Below, piece after piece: positions 202-32,178 of a DNA stretch of 64,000 nucleotides. Every line of letters begins with the position of its first letter. Positions within the stretch are counted from its first letter, which is position 1. Both the position numbers and the translations under genes were made by a program. The notes below the pieces were generated by a model that searched no databases, had not been told where the DNA came from, and saw only the letters and a program-made list of their open reading frames with translations. The stretch lies in sequence record OR493421.1. The stretch is one strand, 5' to 3'.

Positions 202-3200
202 TTACATATACGCGTAACGACTGCGTAACTTACGTGCTTCCAATACCCGACGACCTCTCTCTTCCTTGGCTTTCCTAACGATTTCATCGATGGTCAAACT
301 CTTACGCTTATCCTGAGGGATCATGCTGCTGAGTTTGTCAATCATGTACTCTATCCTTTGAGCCACGGTATTGTCGGTGGTTTTAATGAGTCTGTCACTC
401 AGTTCTTCAACTTTACGACGATAAAGTGCAACCATCGCTTCATTGTGCGCACTGTTGGTTTCCTCATTCTTATCGTCCCCAACACGCATTAAGCTGATTT
501 TACTCAAACTAATGCCTGGAGGAATTCCGTATTCACTTTTATTGTTACCCAGTTTCAAGAACCAGAATCCTAACAACCAAGCGATAACTAGGTCATCGTG
601 TTTATTAGCTTCGTGGTCTATTCTTCCCCCTTTCTCTTTGAGGTTAACCAGTTCGTCGATGAGTTTAGTATAGTAAATTTTATCTCCGGTAGTCCCTACC
701 GCTTCTTGGATAAAACTATATACTTCGTCACGCGTTTTGGCGTTGGTAACGAACCCAAACAGATGTTTGAATCTCAGATAGAAGTGACTGTCTCTGTTAG
801 CGAAATTACGTTGTTTGAACTCGATCATTTCTTTTTCGTACTTAACCGGATCTTGTATGATCTGATTAAAGATACGTTTAAAGGGATCGATCCCCAATGC
901 AGGAAGACTAACGAGCAGTTGGTCGATCATGTGATGCGCGAAGTTACGCTCGATGATCAGTAAGCTGTTCTTAATCTCTAACAGGATCGTTTGTAGTACC
1001 TCACCAACGTCCATTAAGTAGGCTATCGGATAACGACCCACCCCAACGACTTTACCATCCATGACATCCCTTATCACTACTGTACAGGCATCTCGGTTTT
1101 GCGCAGCAGAGGTATCGCATCCAACGACGTAAAAGGTTTGACTATTCCCAGTAATGATTTGAGTATGTTCTTCCGGCGTAATAAACCAGTCGATAAACAA
1201 ACCCGTGCTCCCTACTTCCTGACTCCAGAGTATTCCTCGTTTACCCTCGTTTAACGCTTCTCGGGTTAAGTCGTCAAAAAGTTTACCTTTACTGGCGTCG
1301 TCCCACATTAACAGTAAGTCAATCTTCGCTTCGGCTAAACTTAACTTTAACTCGTCTATGGTTTTCTTAACCCAGTCTTTATTCCTACCCAACTGCAAGT
1401 AGTTGAAAACCATGCCTACGGTAGGACTGGTGATTCCCTCCACAGGACTCGCTTTAATCAAACGCTGGTAGAGATGACTCTCGTTAAAACTGTCGAAGAA
1501 CGTTTCTCGCCACTCGGTCGCATCCATCAACATGTTGTACATGTATTCGCCGCTTGCCGTCGTTTTACTCGCAGGTGTGGTAATGAATCCCGTCCCATAG
1601 GGTTCGCCTATTCTTCTGGCGTTAGCACGAGCCGTTAGCGTACTAGGGCCTGCACCGTTAAGTATCTCTTCCATGAAGTTGATATATGCCGGTTCGTCGA
1701 TCATACGCGTTTTGATAGTCAAACCACGACCAACGTTACGAGCGGCTTCTCTACCGATTTGCGGTACACTAATACGGAAGATGTTCTTCTTATCATCCCC
1801 AAACGCACTATAGGTTAACGAGTTACCGCTATCCTTATCTCGCCACCCCACGTTGGTTAAGTAACTCGGGATGTTGTTACGGATACCCTTTAACGCCTCT
1901 ACGAACTGACTACGGTTATCGTCTTTCAGGGTGATTAAGTGGGATTCGTAAGACTGCCCGGTTAAGTAAGTTAACCAGAACATAATGCTCTGGGCAGAAA
2001 CCGTGTTGTGAGTGACGACGAAATCATCCATGATGTAAAGATGATCAGGATGGTCCACTTCAATGCACTGAGTCTCTTCTTCCCCTACATACTCGATGGA
2101 ACGCATGGTTAAACGGCTGTTAAATTTTAACCCTCGTGTTTTGTCAACTAAACGATCTCGTTTACGACTTAACGTGAAGAGTTCCCAAGGTTTGGTATAA
2201 CGAACGCTAATGCGATAAGAAACCCGGCCAGGTTTACGTTCTCCTTTGTCGGTATAATACGTCTGACGCTCTTTACAAGTACAAATGGCACCGATGCTGC
2301 GAGCAAGGTAAACGAAGTCTTTAGCAAGTTTAGGAGATGTTGTACAGTACTCAATGTTACCACCGGTACCTGCGTGACCATCAGTATCGAGTAAACCCTG
2401 CAACAACTCTAAACGCTGACGATAAGAGCCGTTTAAATAATCCGTAGGAACAAATTTCTCCCAGGACCGAAGGCCCATCAGATCAACACTTTTAAGACTC
2501 TCTTTCATTACGTTAGTCTTTTCTTCAACATCAGGTCTGCGCTTAATGACAAATGTTTTTTCATTACACCATTCGGCGACTAGAGTATCAGGAATGAGGC
2601 TACAGACTTTATCGTAAAGTTCTTTGTCGGGTTTGGTTATTAAAACAGAACTGCCAGAAATACCACCGTCACCCAGCAATACACCTAAGACATAAGGATG
2701 AATGGCAAGTTTCTTATCCGGGTCATTATCAGGCTGAACCAAAGGAACGGAGAGATAGTTATGCGATTTCTTCATCTCAGTCATGCGTTGTTGGCATTCT
2801 AACGTAGTGAGTGTGCGCCAGATACCGCCGTCACCTTTGCCTGGGTCCCAAACAGTCCAGTAATGCTCGGCGCCAACATCCGCAGTACGACCGTCATAAA
2901 AGGTAACACGATATAACGATTTAACGCCCTGAGGATAAACACCAGAGACTCTGGCCGTACCCCCATCTGGAGTACTAACCACATCATTAATCTTGATGTC
3001 ACCCATTCTACGCCATCCATTTGGGATCTTCACTAAGGAATCTAGCTTGCTGAGCTTTCCGAATTGGCGGGGAATGATAAGCATGGTGTTGACGTGGCAC
3101 AAATAACACCATAAGAAACAGATGTTTGCTCTGTTTGCCTGGAACTGAATACCACCGCTCAGATGAAGTACTTCACGGAGGAAATACCAGAAGTTTTCAC

Positions 3201-3600
3201 GGCACTCCTGGAGGATCATGAATTTTTGTTCATCTGTCAGGTTGGGGTCGTAAGGATCTACTCCTATCAGCAACGGATTGTTGAGCTGGAGGCAGAAATA
3301 GTAATTCTTTATCCCCATCAGTCTAAAGATTTCAGCAACCTTTAAGAAAGAGATGTTCTTCGTCGTCAGATCCGGTTTAGCGTTATAACGTTCGAAGTCC
3401 TTTAAGAACCTGACCGTTTTGATCGCACTTAATGTGTCTTCTCGATAATGGGCTAGAAGCAACTCTTCTGGGGTCCTGATGGGAAGCGCTTCTGTGTCGT
3501 CATCGAGCAGGTATTCGGGGAGCTGACTTTCTGTCGCGCCTATCATAGCAAGTTTTTCTCTTGCAAGATGTAGTTCTAATTCGTCTTTACTTGCAAACAT
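202..3600 (-). CDS. terL: terminase large subunit, intein-containing
   Basis: Walker A PRQFGK/T split by the intein, Walker B MIDEPA, nuclease motif GCDTS and HDDLVIA; position matches phiKZ gp25. Start set at MFASK (3600) because a hairpin lies upstream. Confidence 0.93.
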   Translation of the reverse strand: MFASKDELELHLAREKLAMIGATESQLPEYLLDDDTEALPIRTPEELLLAHYREDTLSAIKTVRFLKDFERYNAKPDLTTKNISFLKVAEIFRLMGIKNYYFCLQLNNPLLIGVDPYDPNLTDEQKFMILQECRENFWYFLREVLHLSGGIQFQANRANICFLWCYLCHVNTMLIIPRQFGKLSKLDSLVKIPNGWRRMGDIKINDVVSTPDGGTARVSGVYPQGVKSLYRVTFYDGRTADVGAEHYWTVWDPGKGDGGIWRTLTTLECQQRMTEMKKSHNYLSVPLVQPDNDPDKKLAIHPYVLGVLLGDGGISGSSVLITKPDKELYDKVCSLIPDTLVAEWCNEKTFVIKRRPDVEEKTNVMKESLKSVDLMGLRSWEKFVPTDYLNGSYRQRLELLQGLLDTDGHAGTGGNIEYCTTSPKLAKDFVYLARSIGAICTCKERQTYYTDKGERKPGRVSYRISVRYTKPWELFTLSRKRDRLVDKTRGLKFNSRLTMRSIEYVGEEETQCIEVDHPDHLYIMDDFVVTHNTVSAQSIMFWLTYLTGQSYESHLITLKDDNRSQFVEALKGIRNNIPSYLTNVGWRDKDSGNSLTYSAFGDDKKNIFRISVPQIGREAARNVGRGLTIKTRMIDEPAYINFMEEILNGAGPSTLTARANARRIGEPYGTGFITTPASKTTASGEYMYNMLMDATEWRETFFDSFNESHLYQRLIKASPVEGITSPTVGMVFNYLQLGRNKDWVKKTIDELKLSLAEAKIDLLLMWDDASKGKLFDDLTREALNEGKRGILWSQEVGSTGLFIDWFITPEEHTQIITGNSQTFYVVGCDTSAAQNRDACTVVIRDVMDGKVVGVGRYPIAYLMDVGEVLQTILLEIKNSLLIIERNFAHHMIDQLLVSLPALGIDPFKRIFNQIIQDPVKYEKEMIEFKQRNFANRDSHFYLRFKHLFGFVTNAKTRDEVYSFIQEAVGTTGDKIYYTKLIDELVNLKEKGGRIDHEANKHDDLVIAWLLGFWFLKLGNNKSEYGIPPGISLSKISLMRVGDDKNEETNSAHNEAMVALYRRKVEELSDRLIKTTDNTVAQRIEYMIDKLSSMIPQDKRKSLTIDEIVRKAKEERGRRVLEARKLRSRYAYM
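2005..3054 (-). mobile_element. intein (350 aa, class 3 signature) with LAGLIDADG homing endonuclease
   Basis: N-block LSKLDSLVKIPNGW, block B AEHYW, block F TQCIEV, end VVTHN followed by Thr; LAGLIDADG motifs VLGVLLGDG and LQGLLDTDG; removal restores GKT. Confidence 0.93.
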
Positions 3601-12127: not shown

Positions 12128-12161
12128 TAACTCCTACTCCCCATGCGGGGAGTAGGAGTTA
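12128..12161. terminator. bidirectional terminator between convergent genes
   Basis: 15-bp stem taactcctactcccc-atgc-ggggagtaggagtta. Confidence 0.85.
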
Positions 12162-12170
12162 TTACGCGTT

Positions 12171-12311
12171 TTAAATTTTGCAGGCGCCGCCTTCACATTC
12201 ATCGGAAGCCTCGACAACTTCACCGCCACCATCACGAAGAGATTCGACTTTCTCTTCAACCGCTTCCAGGTTCAGGTTGTTGAGTTGATCCACGTCAAAC
12301 ATGTCAGACAT
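12171..12311 (-). CDS. 46-aa acidic microprotein ending in an NrdA-like tail (DECEGGACKI)
   Basis: ATG at 12311 with AAGGA RBS; MSDMFDVDQLNNLNLEAVEEKVESLRDGGGEVVEASDECEGGACKI. Confidence 0.8.
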   Translation of the reverse strand: MSDMFDVDQLNNLNLEAVEEKVESLRDGGGEVVEASDECEGGACKI

Positions 12312-12325
12312 TTTAAAATCCTTAA

Positions 12326-12820
12326 TTAAAGGTTGATAGGTGCAATAACATTGCCTCGGTTCCACCCCTTCTCAGAGAAGAAATAATCCTTATTCATCAC
12401 AAATGACTCTCTGGCTCTCTCTACGGTCTCACAAAGGGTCGTGTCGTCGAATAAGGCAATCATACCATCGTCCTTTAATTCGGCCCCTACGATGGCTCTG
12501 ACGACGTCTAAGAGGTGTTTATCTTTTTGTTTGTCGTAAGGTCTTATTTCTTCAGAATATAAGCCGGTGATGAATTCAGATAACGTACAAAACACAGGAA
12601 CGGTGTAAACCAATCCGTTTAATCCAGGAGAGACTCTGGGTTTGAAACAGCGACTGTGTTTAACGATCTTGAATTCGCCTTTAATTTTACCAAGGTTAAT
12701 ATCGATAACCATCTTTGTGGCGTTGTTAACCTTGATTCCGATGTCGTTTTTGATATTGATCTTTTTATAACAAAAACCAATACAAAGGATAATAGCAAAA
12801 ACAGCAAGTAAAATAATCAT
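12326..12820 (-). CDS. hypothetical protein with N-terminal membrane anchor
   Basis: Hydrophobic N-terminus MIILLAVFAIILCIGFCY; GAGG RBS. Confidence 0.7.
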   Translation of the reverse strand: MIILLAVFAIILCIGFCYKKINIKNDIGIKVNNATKMVIDINLGKIKGEFKIVKHSRCFKPRVSPGLNGLVYTVPVFCTLSEFITGLYSEEIRPYDKQKDKHLLDVVRAIVGAELKDDGMIALFDDTTLCETVERARESFVMNKDYFFSEKGWNRGNVIAPINL

Positions 12821-12877: not shown

Positions 12878-13561
12878 TTAAGATTTTAATTTACGGTACG
12901 CTTCTAGTACAGCCTCTCTAAAGACAACTTCGTCTTTAAGTTTATCGTGGAACACTTTCCATTCTTGTTCATATAAAGACAATCCTAATTCGGGATAGTT
13001 TTTCCAAACGTAACCCGTCTTAGGTAGGAACTTGTCTAACATGTGAACGCGAACTTCTTCGACCAAAACATCTTCAGTCAGGTTTTGATCTAACCTGAAT
13101 TGAACGGCTCGTTTGCAGTATAACTCGAAATCAGGAATACCTCTGTCGGCCAGAGCGACGGTCTCTGAAATAGGATGACTGAAATCACCCTCCCAGCTTG
13201 CTCTGTGCTCCAGACAACTTTTCGCAATGATCAATGTCTCTTCCGGCGAATAGTGTCCGGTGCAATAACGATGGGTTAAATCGAAGACCAACCCATACGC
13301 TATGAGATGATGGGTTTTACGATCGTAACGACACCCAATGTCGTGAAGCAGGCAACCCGCCAATACCAGGCTACGCCACTGGTCGTCGTAATCTTGTAAT
13401 AATGCAAGATCGTTTCCTTGTCTGCAAACATGATAAACGTGATTCAAATCATGCGCTTTGTCATTAAAGGTGATCGACCATAAGCAGTACCGTAAAAGAT
13501 CAACCGGAATCAAATCCTCGGTTACTGCTTTAAATTTTCCGTACCAGCTTATTGAATCCAT
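12878..13561 (-). CDS. HD-domain phosphohydrolase
   Basis: HDLNHV, LLHDIG, EH and ALAD motifs; AGGAG RBS favours the MDSISW start. Confidence 0.85.
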   Translation of the reverse strand: MDSISWYGKFKAVTEDLIPVDLLRYCLWSITFNDKAHDLNHVYHVCRQGNDLALLQDYDDQWRSLVLAGCLLHDIGCRYDRKTHHLIAYGLVFDLTHRYCTGHYSPEETLIIAKSCLEHRASWEGDFSHPISETVALADRGIPDFELYCKRAVQFRLDQNLTEDVLVEEVRVHMLDKFLPKTGYVWKNYPELGLSLYEQEWKVFHDKLKDEVVFREAVLEAYRKLKS

Positions 13562-13680
13562 GAAAGCAACTCCTATCATTGTTCTTACTTAAATAGTACA
13601 GGTCTCATTCTTTTTGTGTGTTGAATTAAAATGCACGATGAGTCCAGTAGGAGTGCCTAAAGCACCCCTACCATAAAATA

Positions 13681-25371: not shown

Positions 25372-28300
25372 ATGGCTAAAGATGATTTCGACGATTGGGG
25401 AGACGACCCGTTCGCCGGCGATATAGATTTCGACTTCGACTTCGATAACGCACCTAAAAAAGGTTTCTTTGCGAGCATGGGGAGTGGTTTTCTCAGTGAG
25501 CTCCACAGCGGTACGATAGGAAGTTCAGAAGGTAGGTTGAGAACGGCTAAAATGCTCCTCCCAAAATCATTTGGGACTGTCTTTGATTTAAAAAGAGAGT
25601 TTGATTGGAAGAAGCAGGAGATCCTAAGCGAGGTCAAAGCCGGATCAAAAGATATGGTGGAAGATCTCCAGGCAATTGCTCAGATGACCTTAGACCGCCA
25701 CGGCGACAAGGTTCCTAATAAAATTGCCCAGGGGTTGGAGACCTTCAGTAATAAGGACTTTAGCCATTGGGATCAAGGAGGATACACACCTTCTGATCCA
25801 AGTATGGGAGAAGTCGATGAAGATGGCTTAGCCGGTTTTATAAGCGGAGTTACGGCCCAGCAGACAGGAACGATGGTGGGTATTGGGCGGGCTATCAACA
25901 ACATGACCGCGGTAGTTGGCGGTCGTCAATTAGCCCAGCAACAAGCAACCAATTCGCTGTTAGGTGGAATCTCAACCACCCTTCAAGGCATTTTGCGTTA
26001 CCAGAATAAAATCCAGGCTAAGAACGATGCAGTTAAGATCAACTTATTGGCCAGGATGCATTTAACCAACGCTAAATACTACAAGTTCATGGAAGCCTCG
26101 ATGCATCGTCAGATTGACGAGCTTAAAAAGATTACTCTTAATTCAGGTAAGAGTGATTACGAGAAAACTTCCCTGGCCATGGCGGCTAAAGGCAGATTAC
26201 GCGATTCTATCTTCTCCACAATTGGACGTAGGTCCGGTGGGGTGATGGGTTATCTGTCCGAGACGTTCGGTAAAGAAGCCAGAGAGGGGATGCTTTCTAG
26301 TTTAAGCGGAATGGTTGGCGCTGGTAGAATGGGGATGGAGATGTCCGAAGGAATGGGTCTCAATATGGGAACCATTATCGGGCAGATGCTAGCTAACGAG
26401 GTCATTGAGAGAGGACCGGCTTTCTTTAAATCTGGGCAGGGTGCTAAGCTTATTAATAAACTTGCGACCCTCTATCCAAAAGAAGCCAAAAACATCCGCC
26501 GGCAATATCGCAAGTTGGAACAGTTGGGTAGCGTTCTGTCATACGCCGGAACTAACGCGGCTGGTTTAGCAGGAACGATTCTCCGCAATAACGCTAACTA
26601 CGAAGAAGACTTTTCCACCTACGACGATTACCTTGACTCACTTGCTCCCGGTGAAAAACAGTTAAGTGAAAGAGCGTGGCGTTTAAAACAGAAAGGTAAA
26701 AACTTCCTAGGAAATAGATTAAACGATCTTTCTTTTAATATCAACGATTCCCGTGGTAAACAGTACGAACTCAAGAAACGTAACTTGATGGATTTGACTC
26801 AACCCAGCTACTGGAGTAGTCAATCCGATCGTACGTTAAATGAAATCATTCCTGGGTGGTTCGCTAAGCTTCATCTGAGCCTGGAAAAAATTCGTACGGG
26901 TAACGATAACCTGAAAGAAGAACGTTTCGATTACCGTAGCGGGAAGTTCTTAAGTCATAAACAAACTCAAAATGCCGTTAAACGTAATCTGTTGAACGGT
27001 AGAGAATTTAGTGGACTGGCCTCAGGTACGTCCGACATGGTTTCTGCGATTGACAAAAATGGAACGCTGTCACCAGAAGCTAAACGTTTCTTATCTTATC
27101 GTTTGGCGAGAGACGTCGACCAAGATAAAGGATTCAACCCGTTCAACTATTTCGGGATGGAAGACGAAGACGGGCTAACCCCATCGATTCGTAAAGAAAT
27201 TGAACAAGTGATGCGGGGGTCGTTCAGACTAACCGACCAGCATATTGAAGCGGCTAAAAAATCCGGCCTGGCTGGTATTAAAGCTCAGTTGAACATGCCG
27301 ACTGCTAAAAGTAAACGTTTGGCGGCCGATCTTAGTCTGCGAGCCAAAAACCTCAAAGGTTATCTCCCTAATATTTCTCAGCAAATCGATTTGTTACGAA
27401 ACGCTGGTTACGATCCACTATTAAGAGAAATGAATTTGATTAATAGTGAAAACGGGTCAGATTTCTTTAACACCGATGCGATATGGGATCGATTAAAATC
27501 AGAGCTTAATGGTAACGAAGGCCTTATCGAAGAGGATGACGTAGGTCCTCTCCCTACTCGTGGTGGAATGGGTGGGGGTAATTCGAAAACCATTATCAAT
27601 AACCGTCGTGGGTTGTCCGGGAAGGATTCCGGTAAATTAGTTACCGCCCTATCGGAACTCACCGAGCAGCTTAAACTCGGGATTCCCGGCAGACAAGACG
27701 GAAATGCATTAAGCCCAGAGCAAGTTAAATCTTTAACGGATTCTGTAATGGGAATAAGGGATATTAATCAGGAACAATTGGAAGTCCTGAAACAAATCCT
27801 TTCTCGTCAGCCAGCCGAGGTGAATAAACCCAAAACTGATGCTGAAGATGCCGCTGATACCGCACAGAAGAAAACCATCCTCGACCGCATTAAAAGTCTT
27901 GGTGGGATTAAGGATATTTTCAGTGCTGGCATGGATAAACTGCTGGCTCACGAACCACTGATGCTGGGTGGGATGTTAGGTGGGTTAGCGGGATTGGCGA
28001 TTCACGATCCTAAAACAGCGGCGTTGATCGGTGGTGGTGCCGCAGCCTGGGCGTTATATACCAAAGTTCGTAGTATGGCGGACGCCAGAGACGTCAGTGA
28101 CGATGAAGACATTTACGATGGAGAGAGTGAAGATCCGATACTCGAAGCGCGTAAACTCAGAGCCCGTCAGTATTACGACAAAGTGTTAAAGAAAATTATT
28201 ACCAGTTGGAAAGAGATCAAGGGATCGATCGTTGATCTCGGAACCAAGGTCGTGATCTCCGCTAAACGTCTTTCGGGCAAACTGTTCAGTGCCGAAGGCA

Positions 28301-31300
28301 AAGCGGTCGTACTTCGTGGCTTAAACGCGGTGAAATCAGCCGGGTTAAAACTATTTAACTGGCTGGATCCTCTTAACCGATTGAAAGGGATGGGCCAGGG
28401 TATCGCCAATCGAATAACCCAAATGGATGTTTATCGAGTCGGAGAGGATTCCCCTGTTCTGACAAGGAAGGGTTTTGAGAACGGTAAATACTTCAAACGT
28501 TTGAATGGTAGCGTTGTTCCTGTAAAGGGTTGGAGAGATATCGACGGGCCGGTGTATGACGAGAACGGCGACGTTATTATTACCCAAGCCGAATACGAGG
28601 ATGGACTCATTACATCCGGGGGGATGAAAATAGAATCCCTCAAACGTATGACGGGAGTAATGGGTGGTAAACTTCTTGACCTGGGTAGGAAGCTGGGAGA
28701 TCGAGCTAAAGGTTACGGTAAGCGAGCTGGAGATAAGATCAACGATCTTGTAACTGCGGACTATACACCTATTACCAATTCGGTCGATCGTATTTACGCT
28801 CTGCTTTGCCGTAAGTTTGGTTATGACATTAACGACATGCCGGATATCAAGGCTGATATTGTTAATGAAACAAGCCGAATGGGAAACACGGATGATGTCC
28901 GCCTAAACTCCTTAGAAGATAAGGAACGTAAAGCGAAAGCTGAACGTGAATCACGGTATCAAGACGCTATTATCGATCTTGCCGGTCATGGAGAGGGAGA
29001 GAGAGGTTCTGGTTCTCGAGATGGGGAGAAGAAAGAAGGCGGATTCCTTAATGGACTTCTGGGTCTTGTTAAGAACCCCATGGGAACAATTTTGGGCGGA
29101 GTCGTCGGACTTGGCGCTAAACTCTCCAAATTCTTAACCCTTGGGATTACCACTCTGCCTGCTATCGTAGGCGGGTTAACGTCGCTAGCTAAGATCCTTA
29201 CTGTTGGTCTGCTGGGTCGCCGGGCATCTGATGGCGTTGACGATATTGTTGATGCCGCAGGAGGGGCTTCAGGGAGACGTAGAGGAAGAAGAACCAGAGG
29301 CGGTAGGGTAGGTAGAGGAAGAGCATTTAAATTCGGCTTAGCAGGTTTGGCTACCGCTGGATTAGGAATGTATCTCGACTCTACCAATGAAGAGCACGAA
29401 GGCACTAACTGGAAGGATGTAGCGAGCAACACGCTTACTGCAGCCTCAGCAGTATCTTTGGGTTCTAGCGCCATGTCAGCTATGGGGATTAACCTCGGTA
29501 TCGGATCAGCTATTGCTTCTGGTGCGAGTGCTGCCGGGTCGGCTATTGTATCGGGTACAGGTGCTTTGACTACTGCTGTCGCTCCTCTGTTATTTAATCC
29601 AGTAACGTTGGGGATTGGGGCAGTTGCAGGCGCCGGGTATTTGATCTATAAGTATTACGCCAAAGGCAAAGGGTCGCAGTTCAAACTTCGTATGGCTCAA
29701 TATGGTATCAAGGACGTCGAGTCAGATTTAGCCGCTAAGATCAGATCCGCCGAAGAAGCATTACGTGAATATGTCGTCGTAACCGCTGGGGTGGCTTCAA
29801 TAGCTAAATCAGCTCCTCTCGAACAGATATTCCAAAGCTTCATACCTCAAGCCAATGACAAGGGTCAACAGCAGGCTTACTTCACTTGGTTTAATCTTCG
29901 TTTCAAACCTATTTTCCTGACTTACGCTTCTGCGATCGATACCGCGGGGTACAGGGATTTTGAGACGTTCGATAAATCGACCGACGCTAAATTGTACTCT
30001 ACTGTCTCCACCATCAATGACAGAATAGGGACGATCAATCCTTATCCTTATCAGATAGCTGCTCAGTTCGATGAAGCCACACCTATAATGGGTAAAGACC
30101 AAACCATTAATCAGGTTAGGTTGTATTTGGACGAACTGAAAAGCTTTAACGAAAGACACGGAAGAACAGCTGAGGGGATAGAGAAAGAAGGCGTCGTGAC
30201 CATGAAGACCTCCGCCGAACAGGTTGAAAAATCTGAGAAGGCAGGTTGGTGGTCTAGTCTTAAAATGAGAGTGGGTGGGACGTACGAGGATCGTTCTGAT
30301 ATTGAAGAGATCAATAAACGTTATCCGGTAACAAAATCGGTTATGGAAATTAACATCACCGATCTTTTACCAGGGGGAGATAAACCTCTGGCCGGGATAA
30401 CCGCATTGAGATTAGCCGCCTACGGTGATACGGAACACATCCCATGGCGTGTTGAAGCTGTGTTGAAGTTAGAACGGTATTGTGAGGATTACATCAGTGT
30501 AATCGGTAACGACGCTAGATTCACTTCTACCACAGGTGCGGTGTATAACCTCTTTAAGAACTCATTCAGAATAACTGACGACCAAGCTAACCAATGGTGT
30601 ACATGGTTCAGGGATCGTTTCCTCCCAGTCTGTATGGCGTGGGTGAAATACGTGAGGATCATGAGGGGGGTGAAACCAAGCGCGGGTTGGAAGTCCATGA
30701 CTGCCACTAACGCTTTTGATTTCGCAAAAGAGCTTTTAGGGCTCAAAGTGAATATCGGTAAAACCCCGACTTCCGTTTGGGAGGTTAAATGGTCGCCGTT
30801 CCCTAATACAACTTCTGGGTCGATCACACCTCAGGTTAAAGCAATCGTTAATAACCTCGATACCGCCGCGAAGAATGCGAAATTGAATTTTGGCGACAAA
30901 GAAGTTAAAGCTTCTGGAGCTAAAGAAGTCGTTCCGTATACCTCGGCTCACTCAATGGGTGAGGGTGGATTAAATCAGGCTGTTGCGACTGCTGCAATGG
31001 GCGATAACGTCATCGCGGGTGGTCAGCCAGTCATCAACTATAAACCTATTACGGGTAATACCGATACGTCGACAGTTGATCTTTCTGGCGTCACTCCGGT
31101 AGGCGGGTCGGGAGGTGGAGACAAAGGTGTTAGCGTTCCCCAGAAAGCCGCAGAGCAATTAATCATGAAGGAGATGATTAAGGCCGGCTTCACGGATCCT
31201 CGTCTTATTGCTGAAATGTTGGCTTTGGCTAACTTTGAAAGCGGAGGGTTTAAAAATACCGCGGAAAACATGAACTACAAGCCAAGTAGGTTGTTGGAAA

Positions 31301-32178
31301 TTTTCCCAGGTAGAGTGAAGTCCATGGGACAAGCCCAGCAGATCGTAGCTGGAGGCCCTCAGGCCATCGCTAACGCGGTTTATGGTGGTAGGTTGGGTAA
31401 CAGTGGTCCTAACGACGGATGGCTCTACAGAGGTCGTGGGTTCATTCAGCTTACGGGTAAGGATAACTTCAGAGCTGCCTCTCAGTATGTGGGGAAAGAC
31501 CTCGTTAAGAATCCAGAGTTGGTTTCTACCGATCCAGAAGTCATGGCAAAAACCCTGATCTGGTATCTCTCCAACGGTAGTACCGGTAAACGGCTTCAGT
31601 CCATTGTGAAGAACAACTCGTTTGAATATGCCGCTCAAGGACTTAACCCCAATGGCTTGCCTGACATGCCGGCGAGGACAAGACTTTATCAGCAGTATAT
31701 GAAGCGTTTGACTTCTAATGAGCTGACGGTGGATCCTAATGCTGGGACAGGACCTTCATCTTCTGGAGAAACTGTTCCGAGTTCGGTTTCCTCTGTCAGT
31801 CCTGACGCCAAACCACCTACGATGAAATCGGAGAATGTAGGAACGGCCAACAGCGTCGCGGCAGTTTCAGCGATTGCTTCTCCATCGGTTAATCAAGGAC
31901 CTAAACCTATCGGAGCTGTGCCTTCTACCCCGGTGAGTGAGGGATCGGTCGCGTACAAATCCGATCCAGCTAACCCACTTAATCGTGTTAAGGTCCCCAC
32001 TGAGCAAAGTACTTCTGCGCCGCCAACTCCGTTGGCTAAACCGGTTCAGCAACCCGATCCGGTCGCAACGGCTCAAGTTCAGGCCCAAGGAAGAACTAAC
32101 GATTTACTCGCTCAATTGCTTAAAGAAATCCAGAACCAGAAAGCTCCGGATCCTAGGATGGGGTATACGAGCAAATAA
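25372..32178 (+). CDS. tape measure / tail lysin with C-terminal GH19 lysozyme-like domain (phiKZ gp181-like)
   Basis: 2268 aa, Gly/Ala-rich hydrophobic segments, FES and YRGRGFIQLTG motifs; divergent from vRNAP genes. Confidence 0.88.
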   Translation: MAKDDFDDWGDDPFAGDIDFDFDFDNAPKKGFFASMGSGFLSELHSGTIGSSEGRLRTAKMLLPKSFGTVFDLKREFDWKKQEILSEVKAGSKDMVEDLQAIAQMTLDRHGDKVPNKIAQGLETFSNKDFSHWDQGGYTPSDPSMGEVDEDGLAGFISGVTAQQTGTMVGIGRAINNMTAVVGGRQLAQQQATNSLLGGISTTLQGILRYQNKIQAKNDAVKINLLARMHLTNAKYYKFMEASMHRQIDELKKITLNSGKSDYEKTSLAMAAKGRLRDSIFSTIGRRSGGVMGYLSETFGKEAREGMLSSLSGMVGAGRMGMEMSEGMGLNMGTIIGQMLANEVIERGPAFFKSGQGAKLINKLATLYPKEAKNIRRQYRKLEQLGSVLSYAGTNAAGLAGTILRNNANYEEDFSTYDDYLDSLAPGEKQLSERAWRLKQKGKNFLGNRLNDLSFNINDSRGKQYELKKRNLMDLTQPSYWSSQSDRTLNEIIPGWFAKLHLSLEKIRTGNDNLKEERFDYRSGKFLSHKQTQNAVKRNLLNGREFSGLASGTSDMVSAIDKNGTLSPEAKRFLSYRLARDVDQDKGFNPFNYFGMEDEDGLTPSIRKEIEQVMRGSFRLTDQHIEAAKKSGLAGIKAQLNMPTAKSKRLAADLSLRAKNLKGYLPNISQQIDLLRNAGYDPLLREMNLINSENGSDFFNTDAIWDRLKSELNGNEGLIEEDDVGPLPTRGGMGGGNSKTIINNRRGLSGKDSGKLVTALSELTEQLKLGIPGRQDGNALSPEQVKSLTDSVMGIRDINQEQLEVLKQILSRQPAEVNKPKTDAEDAADTAQKKTILDRIKSLGGIKDIFSAGMDKLLAHEPLMLGGMLGGLAGLAIHDPKTAALIGGGAAAWALYTKVRSMADARDVSDDEDIYDGESEDPILEARKLRARQYYDKVLKKIITSWKEIKGSIVDLGTKVVISAKRLSGKLFSAEGKAVVLRGLNAVKSAGLKLFNWLDPLNRLKGMGQGIANRITQMDVYRVGEDSPVLTRKGFENGKYFKRLNGSVVPVKGWRDIDGPVYDENGDVIITQAEYEDGLITSGGMKIESLKRMTGVMGGKLLDLGRKLGDRAKGYGKRAGDKINDLVTADYTPITNSVDRIYALLCRKFGYDINDMPDIKADIVNETSRMGNTDDVRLNSLEDKERKAKAERESRYQDAIIDLAGHGEGERGSGSRDGEKKEGGFLNGLLGLVKNPMGTILGGVVGLGAKLSKFLTLGITTLPAIVGGLTSLAKILTVGLLGRRASDGVDDIVDAAGGASGRRRGRRTRGGRVGRGRAFKFGLAGLATAGLGMYLDSTNEEHEGTNWKDVASNTLTAASAVSLGSSAMSAMGINLGIGSAIASGASAAGSAIVSGTGALTTAVAPLLFNPVTLGIGAVAGAGYLIYKYYAKGKGSQFKLRMAQYGIKDVESDLAAKIRSAEEALREYVVVTAGVASIAKSAPLEQIFQSFIPQANDKGQQQAYFTWFNLRFKPIFLTYASAIDTAGYRDFETFDKSTDAKLYSTVSTINDRIGTINPYPYQIAAQFDEATPIMGKDQTINQVRLYLDELKSFNERHGRTAEGIEKEGVVTMKTSAEQVEKSEKAGWWSSLKMRVGGTYEDRSDIEEINKRYPVTKSVMEINITDLLPGGDKPLAGITALRLAAYGDTEHIPWRVEAVLKLERYCEDYISVIGNDARFTSTTGAVYNLFKNSFRITDDQANQWCTWFRDRFLPVCMAWVKYVRIMRGVKPSAGWKSMTATNAFDFAKELLGLKVNIGKTPTSVWEVKWSPFPNTTSGSITPQVKAIVNNLDTAAKNAKLNFGDKEVKASGAKEVVPYTSAHSMGEGGLNQAVATAAMGDNVIAGGQPVINYKPITGNTDTSTVDLSGVTPVGGSGGGDKGVSVPQKAAEQLIMKEMIKAGFTDPRLIAEMLALANFESGGFKNTAENMNYKPSRLLEIFPGRVKSMGQAQQIVAGGPQAIANAVYGGRLGNSGPNDGWLYRGRGFIQLTGKDNFRAASQYVGKDLVKNPELVSTDPEVMAKTLIWYLSNGSTGKRLQSIVKNNSFEYAAQGLNPNGLPDMPARTRLYQQYMKRLTSNELTVDPNAGTGPSSSGETVPSSVSSVSPDAKPPTMKSENVGTANSVAAVSAIASPSVNQGPKPIGAVPSTPVSEGSVAYKSDPANPLNRVKVPTEQSTSAPPTPLAKPVQQPDPVATAQVQAQGRTNDLLAQLLKEIQNQKAPDPRMGYTSK

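Follow-up and report, generated by a model that had tools for sequence, protein, structure and literature searches.

A gene of 46 codons in Klebsiella phage YC1 encodes a micro-protein that mimics the redox-active C-terminal tail of NrdA, the large subunit of class Ia ribonucleotide reductase (RNR). We tentatively propose that the micro-protein acts in trans as a free version of the redox arm of the host NrdA; it would join the electron relay from thioredoxin/glutaredoxin to RNR and probably sustain the host RNR. The stand-alone mimicry had been suggested by a first-pass annotation and is borne out here by a tail that is conserved over many phage lineages, is under selection and is fused to other proteins elsewhere. 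No RNR could be found in the tail-bearing phages examined. The stretch of DNA analyzed, referred to as the window, comprises 64,000 nucleotides. It is 100% identical to the YC1 record OR493421.1 (window position 1 is record position 124001) and shares 98% identity with phage Miami and its relatives, which are jumbo myoviruses of 252-257 kb.

The micro-gene is located on the minus strand at 12171..12311, with the ATG at 12309-12311 and a TAA stop after 46 codons. Its product is WNY41017.1 in phage YC1 and gp244 in phage Miami. The ORF has its own ribosome-binding site, as claimed at first reading: the motif AAGGA can be read from the sequence at 12319..12323 (minus strand), separated from the ATG by a 7-nt spacer, and a ribosome-binding site is annotated at the equivalent place in Miami. 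The encoded protein carries a net charge of -10 and ends with DECEGGACKI-stop. Its residues 1-14 (12270..12311, minus) are acidic with spaced hydrophobic residues; their sequence is variable, the pattern recurs across the family, and they are a possible candidate for a docking motif. Residues 15-27 (12231..12269, minus) are predicted to form a helix, which the AlphaFold2 (AF2) model places at residues 15-28 with low confidence (pLDDT about 60-66). A Gly-Gly-Gly hinge follows at residues 28-30 (12222..12230, minus) and is invariant in an alignment of five homologues. The NrdA-like redox tail then occupies residues 31-46 (12174..12221, minus) with Cys39 at 12195-12197, Cys44 at 12180-12182, and the terminal Lys-Ile. 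In the AF2 model, which was built from five sequences, the mean pLDDT is 59 and residues 29-46 are coil. The micro-protein is thus predicted to be mostly unstructured, which agrees with the earlier description of an acidic, probably disordered peptide.

Ten nucleotides 3' of the micro-gene stop, a perfect 15-bp hairpin begins (12128..12161, no strand assigned), placed between the micro-gene and the convergent tail-tube gene. Its folding energy is -29.5 kcal/mol (z=-6.7), and no shuffled sequence folds equally well. As the Miami annotation has a terminator at the corresponding hairpin, this element is probably a bidirectional terminator. It is clear on folding and was missed by a simple consensus scan for terminators because the U-run begins 9-10 nt past the stem. 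The genes convergent to the micro-gene encode tail sheath and tail tube. Upstream and co-directional lies a gene for a 164-residue protein with a hydrophobic N-terminus (12326..12820, minus; PHROG 35362, unknown function; no Pfam match). Its stop is situated, in a different frame, only 14 nt before the micro-gene ATG; hence, we infer that both genes are co-transcribed. The second co-directional gene upstream (12878..13579, minus; PHROG 3921, unknown function) encodes 233 residues with a weak Pfam signature of HD phosphohydrolases (E=0.0028, below the curated cut-off), and the Miami annotation calls the counterpart a 'putative metal-dependent' hydrolase. This HD-like protein is a possible candidate for a neighbour in nucleotide metabolism.

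The likeness to NrdA is located at the very C-terminus. Residues 733-761 of E. coli R1, as printed from PDB entries, end with DDGCESGACKI, which fixes Cys754 and Cys759 within the motif. Compared with this end, the micro-protein is identical at 8 of the last 10 positions, including both Cys and the terminal KI, exactly as had been counted from the sequence before. The Klebsiella NrdA ORF aligns to E. coli R1 across all 761 residues (PDB); it has the same end as the E. coli protein and gives the same 8/10 match. The last 8 residues of the micro-protein (CEGGACKI) are those of the NrdA ends of Proteus, Providencia, Photorhabdus, Xenorhabdus, Yersinia, Pectobacterium, Shewanella, and others. Slightly upstream, the residues EVVE are also shared with NrdA of the Proteus/Providencia/Photorhabdus/Xenorhabdus type, so about 18 residues are alike with one indel. 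As in class Ia NrdA, the two Cys form a C-terminal CX4C with two residues to the free carboxyl end, and an acidic flexible stretch, predicted to be disordered, precedes the common end C-E-[S/G]-G-A-C-K-I-COOH.

A degenerate DNA pattern derived from the variation within the family (C-[D/E]-x-G-[A/G]-C-K-I-stop) was searched in one genome per bacterial species and matched at least 120 loci. Among the matches listed, the pattern ends at a stop codon in 119 loci, and in 106 of these it closes a long ORF that contains the class Ia NrdA motif K-T-L-Y-Y. These 106 NrdA ends come from Enterobacterales, Vibrio, Shewanella, Pseudoalteromonas, Alcaligenaceae, and others. Searches with the protein itself behaved differently: phmmer of the 46 residues against the PDB returned only chance matches to helical bundles and no NrdA, and NrdA is also absent at E<0.001 when the profile of the micro-protein family is compared with 1.84 billion proteins. 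Judged by sequence, the likeness is too short to become significant against whole databases, and the case for it lies in the exact C-terminal register and in conservation; it was brought out by the NrdA ends retrieved with the pattern and by queries with NrdA tails.

The micro-protein is not a member of the NrdA family as the body of the enzyme is absent. The catalytic ten-stranded barrel, the ATP-cone, and the Tyr-Tyr motif of radical transfer are missing from the 46 residues, there is no Pfam match, and the N-terminal half has no counterpart in NrdA. When NrdA proteins were used as tblastn queries, only their last 27-53 residues aligned to the micro-ORF (E=0.03-0.2, small database). Capture of DNA from a host nrdA gene was considered as the origin of the tail and rejected: when the gene (141 nt) was compared by blastn with the genomes of 5,426 E. 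coli strains, nrdA was not matched. As a separate observation from the bacterial loci, the NrdA tail of Psychrosphaera algicola (L040:3608-3634, plus) is out of frame with the NrdA body and forms a 23-residue piece from stop to stop, which reflects either a fault in the assembly or an nrdA that is genuinely interrupted.

Homologues of the micro-gene were detected by tblastn in 86 phage records, mostly of jumbo phages, which infect Erwinia, Klebsiella, Serratia, Dickeya, Salmonella, Yersinia, Colwellia, and Pseudoalteromonas. In the alignment of five homologues, 20 of the last 21 columns are identical, and the N-terminal half is variable. The tail is under purifying selection: in its last 19 codons, the gene has 5 synonymous and 0 amino-acid-changing codon differences to L195, which is Erwinia phage pEa_SNUABM_7 in its IMG/VR copy, and 7 synonymous and 1 amino-acid-changing codon differences to a second lineage (L172). 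An exact match of eight C-terminal residues is expected with a chance of about 20^-8 per ORF; together with the 86 phage records and the mostly synonymous differences in the tail, this means that the likeness to the NrdA tail exceeds chance.

The profile search against the 1.84 billion proteins gave 32 clusters at E<0.001, of which 30 end in the tail. It had been suggested to look for relatives with the same short-ORF ending, and the tail is indeed kept: both Cys are retained in 33/33 relatives, 30 of which have the spacing CX4C and 3 the spacing CX3C. The chain ends with Ile in 32/33. The residue before it is Lys in 22/33, and variants have I, S, A, M, T, or E at this position. In front of the tail, 31/33 have a GG[GAM]E hinge. 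The family also corresponds to PHROG 10239 (E=2e-4, residues 4-46 against profile positions 6-47 of 47), which is labelled 'unknown function'. In the literature, we found no published description of the tail motif strings or of a phage protein that acts on the host RNR through such a tail, which accords with the initial statement that no free RNR-tail protein has been characterised.

Conservation also bears on whether the ORF has a redox role at all. A short, acidic product with two Cys after a Gly-rich stretch might instead be processed into a modified peptide, bind metal, or stem from a leftover ORF without a function, and the expression of the homologue in phage phiR1-37 is very low. For that homologue, g117 (L009:5959-6114, plus), the published RNA-seq values are 3.9, 1.5, and 1.2, compared with 34486 for its neighbour g118, so g117 is nearly silent under the conditions of that experiment. 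This low signal also counts against the helper function that we favour. However, a dead ORF is at odds with purifying selection and with the presence in 86 phage records. In a modified peptide, the conserved C-terminal 'core' and the variable N-terminal 'leader' would be the reverse of typical precursors, and neither Pfam nor PHROGs revealed peptide-modifying enzymes among the neighbours. We regard these non-redox origins as very improbable.

The first-pass annotation had noted that no nrdA is present in the window. This holds for the window and extends to 250 of the 252.5 kb of YC1, in which neither tblastn nor the annotation revealed one. For this search, 85 bacterial and viral NrdA sequences and one NrdB (from Klebsiella) were used as tblastn queries against YC1, Erwinia phage pEa_SNUABM_13, and Escherichia phage N4. 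In the YC1 sequence, no NrdA or NrdB was detected, and the best match was the micro-ORF itself (E about 0.03). The complete genome of pEa_SNUABM_13 gave noise only, the tail included, and in the complete genome of N4, the best match was the tail of gp48; NrdA and NrdB were detected in neither. The YC1 annotation lists no RNR of any kind, classes II and III being excluded there by annotation only. It does contain thymidine kinase, thymidylate synthase, dihydrofolate reductase, and PnuC/NadR-type genes. The gene table of phiR1-37 (supplement of the respective paper) has no entry with 'ribonucleotide', and among the 84 IMG/VR matches to the tail pattern, an NrdA with the tail and a small ORF with the tail never occur on one contig. 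In 69 loci of 1-14 kb with a non-NrdA tail ORF, nrdA or nrdB was adjacent in none, and the only matches were nrdA ends cut at the locus edge.

These searches decide on a split RNR, i.e., the proposal that the peptide is the detached tail of a tail-less NrdA of the phage. Such an arrangement has a precedent in the class II NrdJa+b enzymes, in which the Cys-rich regeneration domain is encoded by a separate gene (PMC5704485). It had been listed among the initial options together with the advice to check whether the phage's own NrdA lacks the C-terminal CxxxxC. As YC1 has no NrdA to be checked and no NrdB (tblastn with the 85 NrdA queries and one NrdB against 250 of the 252.5 kb), and as the same applies to pEa_SNUABM_13 and N4, we reject a split RNR for YC1 with hardly any reservation.

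The same tail occurs on proteins of quite different build. In IMG/VR, the tail pattern was present at 84 loci, 28 of which are NrdA-like and 56 of which are other ORFs. The tail-bearing micro-proteins among them have about 40-70 residues and N-terminal halves which are mutually unrelated and always acidic. The tail also ends proteins of 160-300 residues with two different types of N-terminal domain (about 120-250 residues each, without a Pfam match; P0007, P0010, and P0014 for one type, P0011, P0012, P0020, and P0022 for the other). Furthermore, it is found on a four-Cys zinc-ribbon protein (L144:1246-1419, minus), on a 123-residue protein (L187:5787-6158, plus), and on PF13876 proteins of 123-140 residues in contigs of about 70 kb. 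One PF13876 protein is gp48 of Escherichia phage N4 (L188:1088-1459, plus; NC_008720.1 33632-34003), whose C-terminus reads CEGGGCKI. Those PF13876 homologues whose alignment continues through the tail belong without exception to Enterobacterales phages; the PF13876 proteins of N4-like Pseudomonas, Rhizobium, Achromobacter, and Agrobacterium phages have no tail and carry another, Cys-free C-terminal extension instead. Since the same tail is attached to unrelated micro-proteins, to the 160-300-residue proteins, to a zinc-ribbon protein, and to N4 gp48, the NrdA-type tail is a portable module.

The gene neighbourhood is not conserved along with the tail. The neighbours of the micro-gene homologues in YC1, PCH45, pEa_SNUABM_13, FBKp24, and phiR1-37 have no BLAST-detectable homologues in common, and they are unrelated to the N-terminal domains of the fused tail-bearing proteins. 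Among the sampled neighbours of tail-bearing ORFs (ten were examined by Pfam), there was no trx or grx gene. No genes for Fe-S assembly or cysteine desulfurase were seen beside the phage copies.

A cellular copy of the tail was found in Neisseria. Among the bacterial matches listed, 13 loci were not NrdA, and 12 of these are true nrdA ends cut by the locus edge or a frame shift, chance matches, or an acidic ORF of 42 residues. This ORF is present in seven of the loci, namely six Neisseria genomes and a 778-nt contig labelled Terrabacter. The thirteenth locus (L103) is a divergent copy located elsewhere in another Neisseria genome. As the 42-residue ORF also occurs in the IMG/VR locus L158, there are eight Neisseria-type loci in all. 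In 7/8 of them, the ORF is positioned about 70 nt upstream of iscU, and it is downstream of iscS and iscR wherever the locus is long enough (4 loci). Copies are located at L014:497-625 (minus) and in L024, L095, L098, L112, L158, and L044, and the divergent copy is in L103. L158 is classified as 'viral' in IMG/VR, but it looks like chromosomal DNA rather than a virus because its order iscR-iscS-ORF-iscU is that of Neisseria. The Neisseria ORF is under purifying selection, with 7-12 synonymous versus 1-3 amino-acid-changing codon differences. An HMM of the phage N-terminal halves also matches the Neisseria micro-ORFs (E=0.015, small database). In a PDB search with the Neisseria ORF, 13/13 matches at E<=10 were C-termini of RNR alpha, including the 25-mer R1 peptide 1qfn_B, a result that counts for an RNR-related role. 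Also among the matches was the end of chain 7mdi_A, identified as N. gonorrhoeae NrdA in PMC11226230; hence, Neisseria NrdA appears to keep its own tail.

Because the Neisseria copy sits in the isc operon for Fe-S assembly, the redox arm may not serve RNR alone. It could be a general dithiol arm, recharged by thioredoxin or glutaredoxin (Trx/Grx), for a client other than RNR, such as the sulfur transfer between IscS and IscU or the domains to which the tail is fused. The position next to iscU, iscS, and iscR and the selection on the Neisseria ORF speak for such a client, as do the fusions to several unrelated phage domains and the lack of nrd genes beside the tail ORF in any locus. The likeness to the NrdA tail would then reflect a common motif for redoxin recognition. 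We consider a non-RNR client rather unlikely. The match to NrdA spans the whole end, with the Lys-Ile and the EVVE, and goes beyond the known need of redoxin recognition. Moreover, no Fe-S or cysteine-desulfurase genes were seen beside the phage copies.

We return to the free copy of the host NrdA arm. In the enzyme, the NrdA tail enters the active site, reduces the disulfide formed during turnover, and is then re-reduced by thioredoxin or glutaredoxin (PMC5704485, PMC4078304). By analogy, the C-terminal 16 residues of the micro-protein would be recognised by the host Trx/Grx and by the active-site cleft of NrdA, and the acidic N-terminal half, the helix, and the Gly hinge would provide docking and reach. 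The likeliest net effect would be the supply of extra reducing arms, by which the turnover of the host RNR is sustained during phage DNA synthesis. More generally, RNR-less phages and Neisseria might share a portable 'RNR arm', free or fused, that passes electrons from Trx/Grx to the host RNR or to another disulfide or persulfide client; this wider proposal is made with the same caution as the narrower one. The sequences show the mimicry, a tail conserved under selection, its reuse on different carriers, and the lack of an RNR in the phage; binding to NrdA, Trx, or Grx, redox cycling, and the direction of the effect are inferred.

Both Cys and the terminal register are invariant, a Gly hinge is present, and the carriers are varied; these features speak against a plug and for an arm that works in redox transfer. 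Both Cys and the terminal register are required for a complete dithiol-disulfide cycle, whereas a mere binder or trap does not need both. A helper is favoured as the carriers examined have no RNR of their own. The class II NrdJa+b enzymes (PMC5704485) also provide a precedent for an RNR regeneration module on a gene of its own. Several points count against it. The cis tail of NrdA is present at a high effective concentration, and the gain from a free copy is not obvious. The tail ORFs have no nrd genes beside them, and the sole cellular copy among the matches listed is that in the isc operon of Neisseria. Finally, the YC1 tail differs from the NrdA of its own host at 2/10 positions and thus does not track the host variant exactly.

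The same tail could also be turned against the enzyme. Inhibition is a frequent role of small, disordered, acidic proteins from phages, and with the acidic N-terminal half as an anchor, the free tail might compete with NrdA's own tail for the NrdA cleft or for Trx/Grx and slow down the regeneration of the host RNR. Its action would then resemble that of yeast Sml1, although no relation in sequence is expected. Sml1 reportedly acts via competition with the C-terminal domain of R1, as Zhang et al. are said to have described in 2007, and tail mimicry is equally compatible with this mode of action. Such an inhibitor or decoy is the main rival, but we hold it to be unlikely. The carriers examined, being without RNR, must depend on the host enzyme and would be starved by its inhibition. 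In a trap or plug, losing one Cys would be acceptable or even advantageous, and yet both are kept in 33/33 relatives. The chromosomal copy in Neisseria is maintained by selection and coexists with a tail-bearing NrdA. A free tail should lose against the cis tail if the N-terminal half does not anchor it. Inspected by eye, the N-terminal half somewhat resembles the end of Klebsiella NrdB, and an NrdB tail mimic would make the micro-protein a bivalent binder that blocks the association of the subunits. This candidate is not supported: when an HMM of the N-terminal halves of the family was run against 4,955 ORF segments taken from the nrd loci of 120 bacterial matches, the Neisseria micro-ORFs were detected, and NrdB tails were not at E<=10. 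We prefer the helper, i.e., the free NrdA arm acting in trans.

Among known systems, the micro-protein would work most like the NrdA tail itself. The yeast proteins Sml1, Spd1, Hug1, and Dif1 are small disordered regulators of RNR, and Sml1 acts on the large subunit at the regeneration step of the C-terminal arm. The micro-protein would resemble this group in being small, predicted to be disordered, and putatively directed at the same RNR step. Sml1, in contrast, is cellular and inhibitory and is no copy of the tail. Redoxins such as Trx, Grx, NrdH, and T4 NrdC have a thioredoxin fold of about 75-110 residues with a CXXC active site; the micro-protein is none of these, as it has no Pfam match, a CX4C instead of CXXC, and one predicted helix plus coil. 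Conceptually, NrdJb of the class II NrdJa+b enzymes is nearest, since there, too, an electron-carrying part of RNR is encoded by its own gene. NrdJb is a separately encoded zinc-binding domain of 150-220 residues with six conserved Cys (PMC5704485), it is folded, and it belongs to the organism's own split enzyme. The micro-protein has 46 residues and two Cys, there is no RNR gene in its genome, and its likely partner is the complete enzyme of the host. N4 gp48 shares the C-terminal tail and the RNR-less phage background, but there the tail is appended to a folded domain of 100 residues without an assigned function. Facklamia ignava has a glutaredoxin domain fused to NrdB (PMC6187632), which is another natural rearrangement of the relay from Trx/Grx to RNR. 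There, enzyme and reductant are joined in one protein, whereas in the phage a copy of the acceptor arm stands alone, as a separate gene in a genome that lacks the enzyme.

If the proposal is true, this would be the first case of a virus that copies the mobile redox arm of an enzyme, and not the enzyme, to steer the supply of dNTPs. RNR paces the supply of DNA precursors, and phages and bacteria contend for it; certain reverse transcriptases with a defence role are reportedly triggered when phage NrdAB raises the dNTPs (bioRxiv 10.64898/2026.10.27.754916). For phages without RNR, a copy of the arm with 46 residues would be a very economical handle on the host enzyme. It would also offer RNR enzymology a natural 'tail in trans' reagent for its least understood step, the re-reduction of the active site. 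The presence of the tail on gp48 of N4, a classical model phage, and the copy in the Neisseria isc operon make the question testable in well-studied systems, and the latter may point to a connection of the redoxin relay with Fe-S assembly.

Some further observations concern the YC1 genome and its relatives. At window 202-3600 (minus), the YC1 annotation has 'terminase large subunit, intein-containing', and two more CDS with this label are located about 35 kb away (record 85426-88972). The Stenotrophomonas phage BUCTxx100 (OR529409.1) is 98% identical to the Klebsiella Miami-like phages over a 2.4-kb query, which makes its host label surprising. A single CDS of 6.8 kb at window 25372-32178 (plus) is named 'endolysin' in YC1. 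This is unusually long for a lysin, and the product is probably a virion-associated multi-domain protein.
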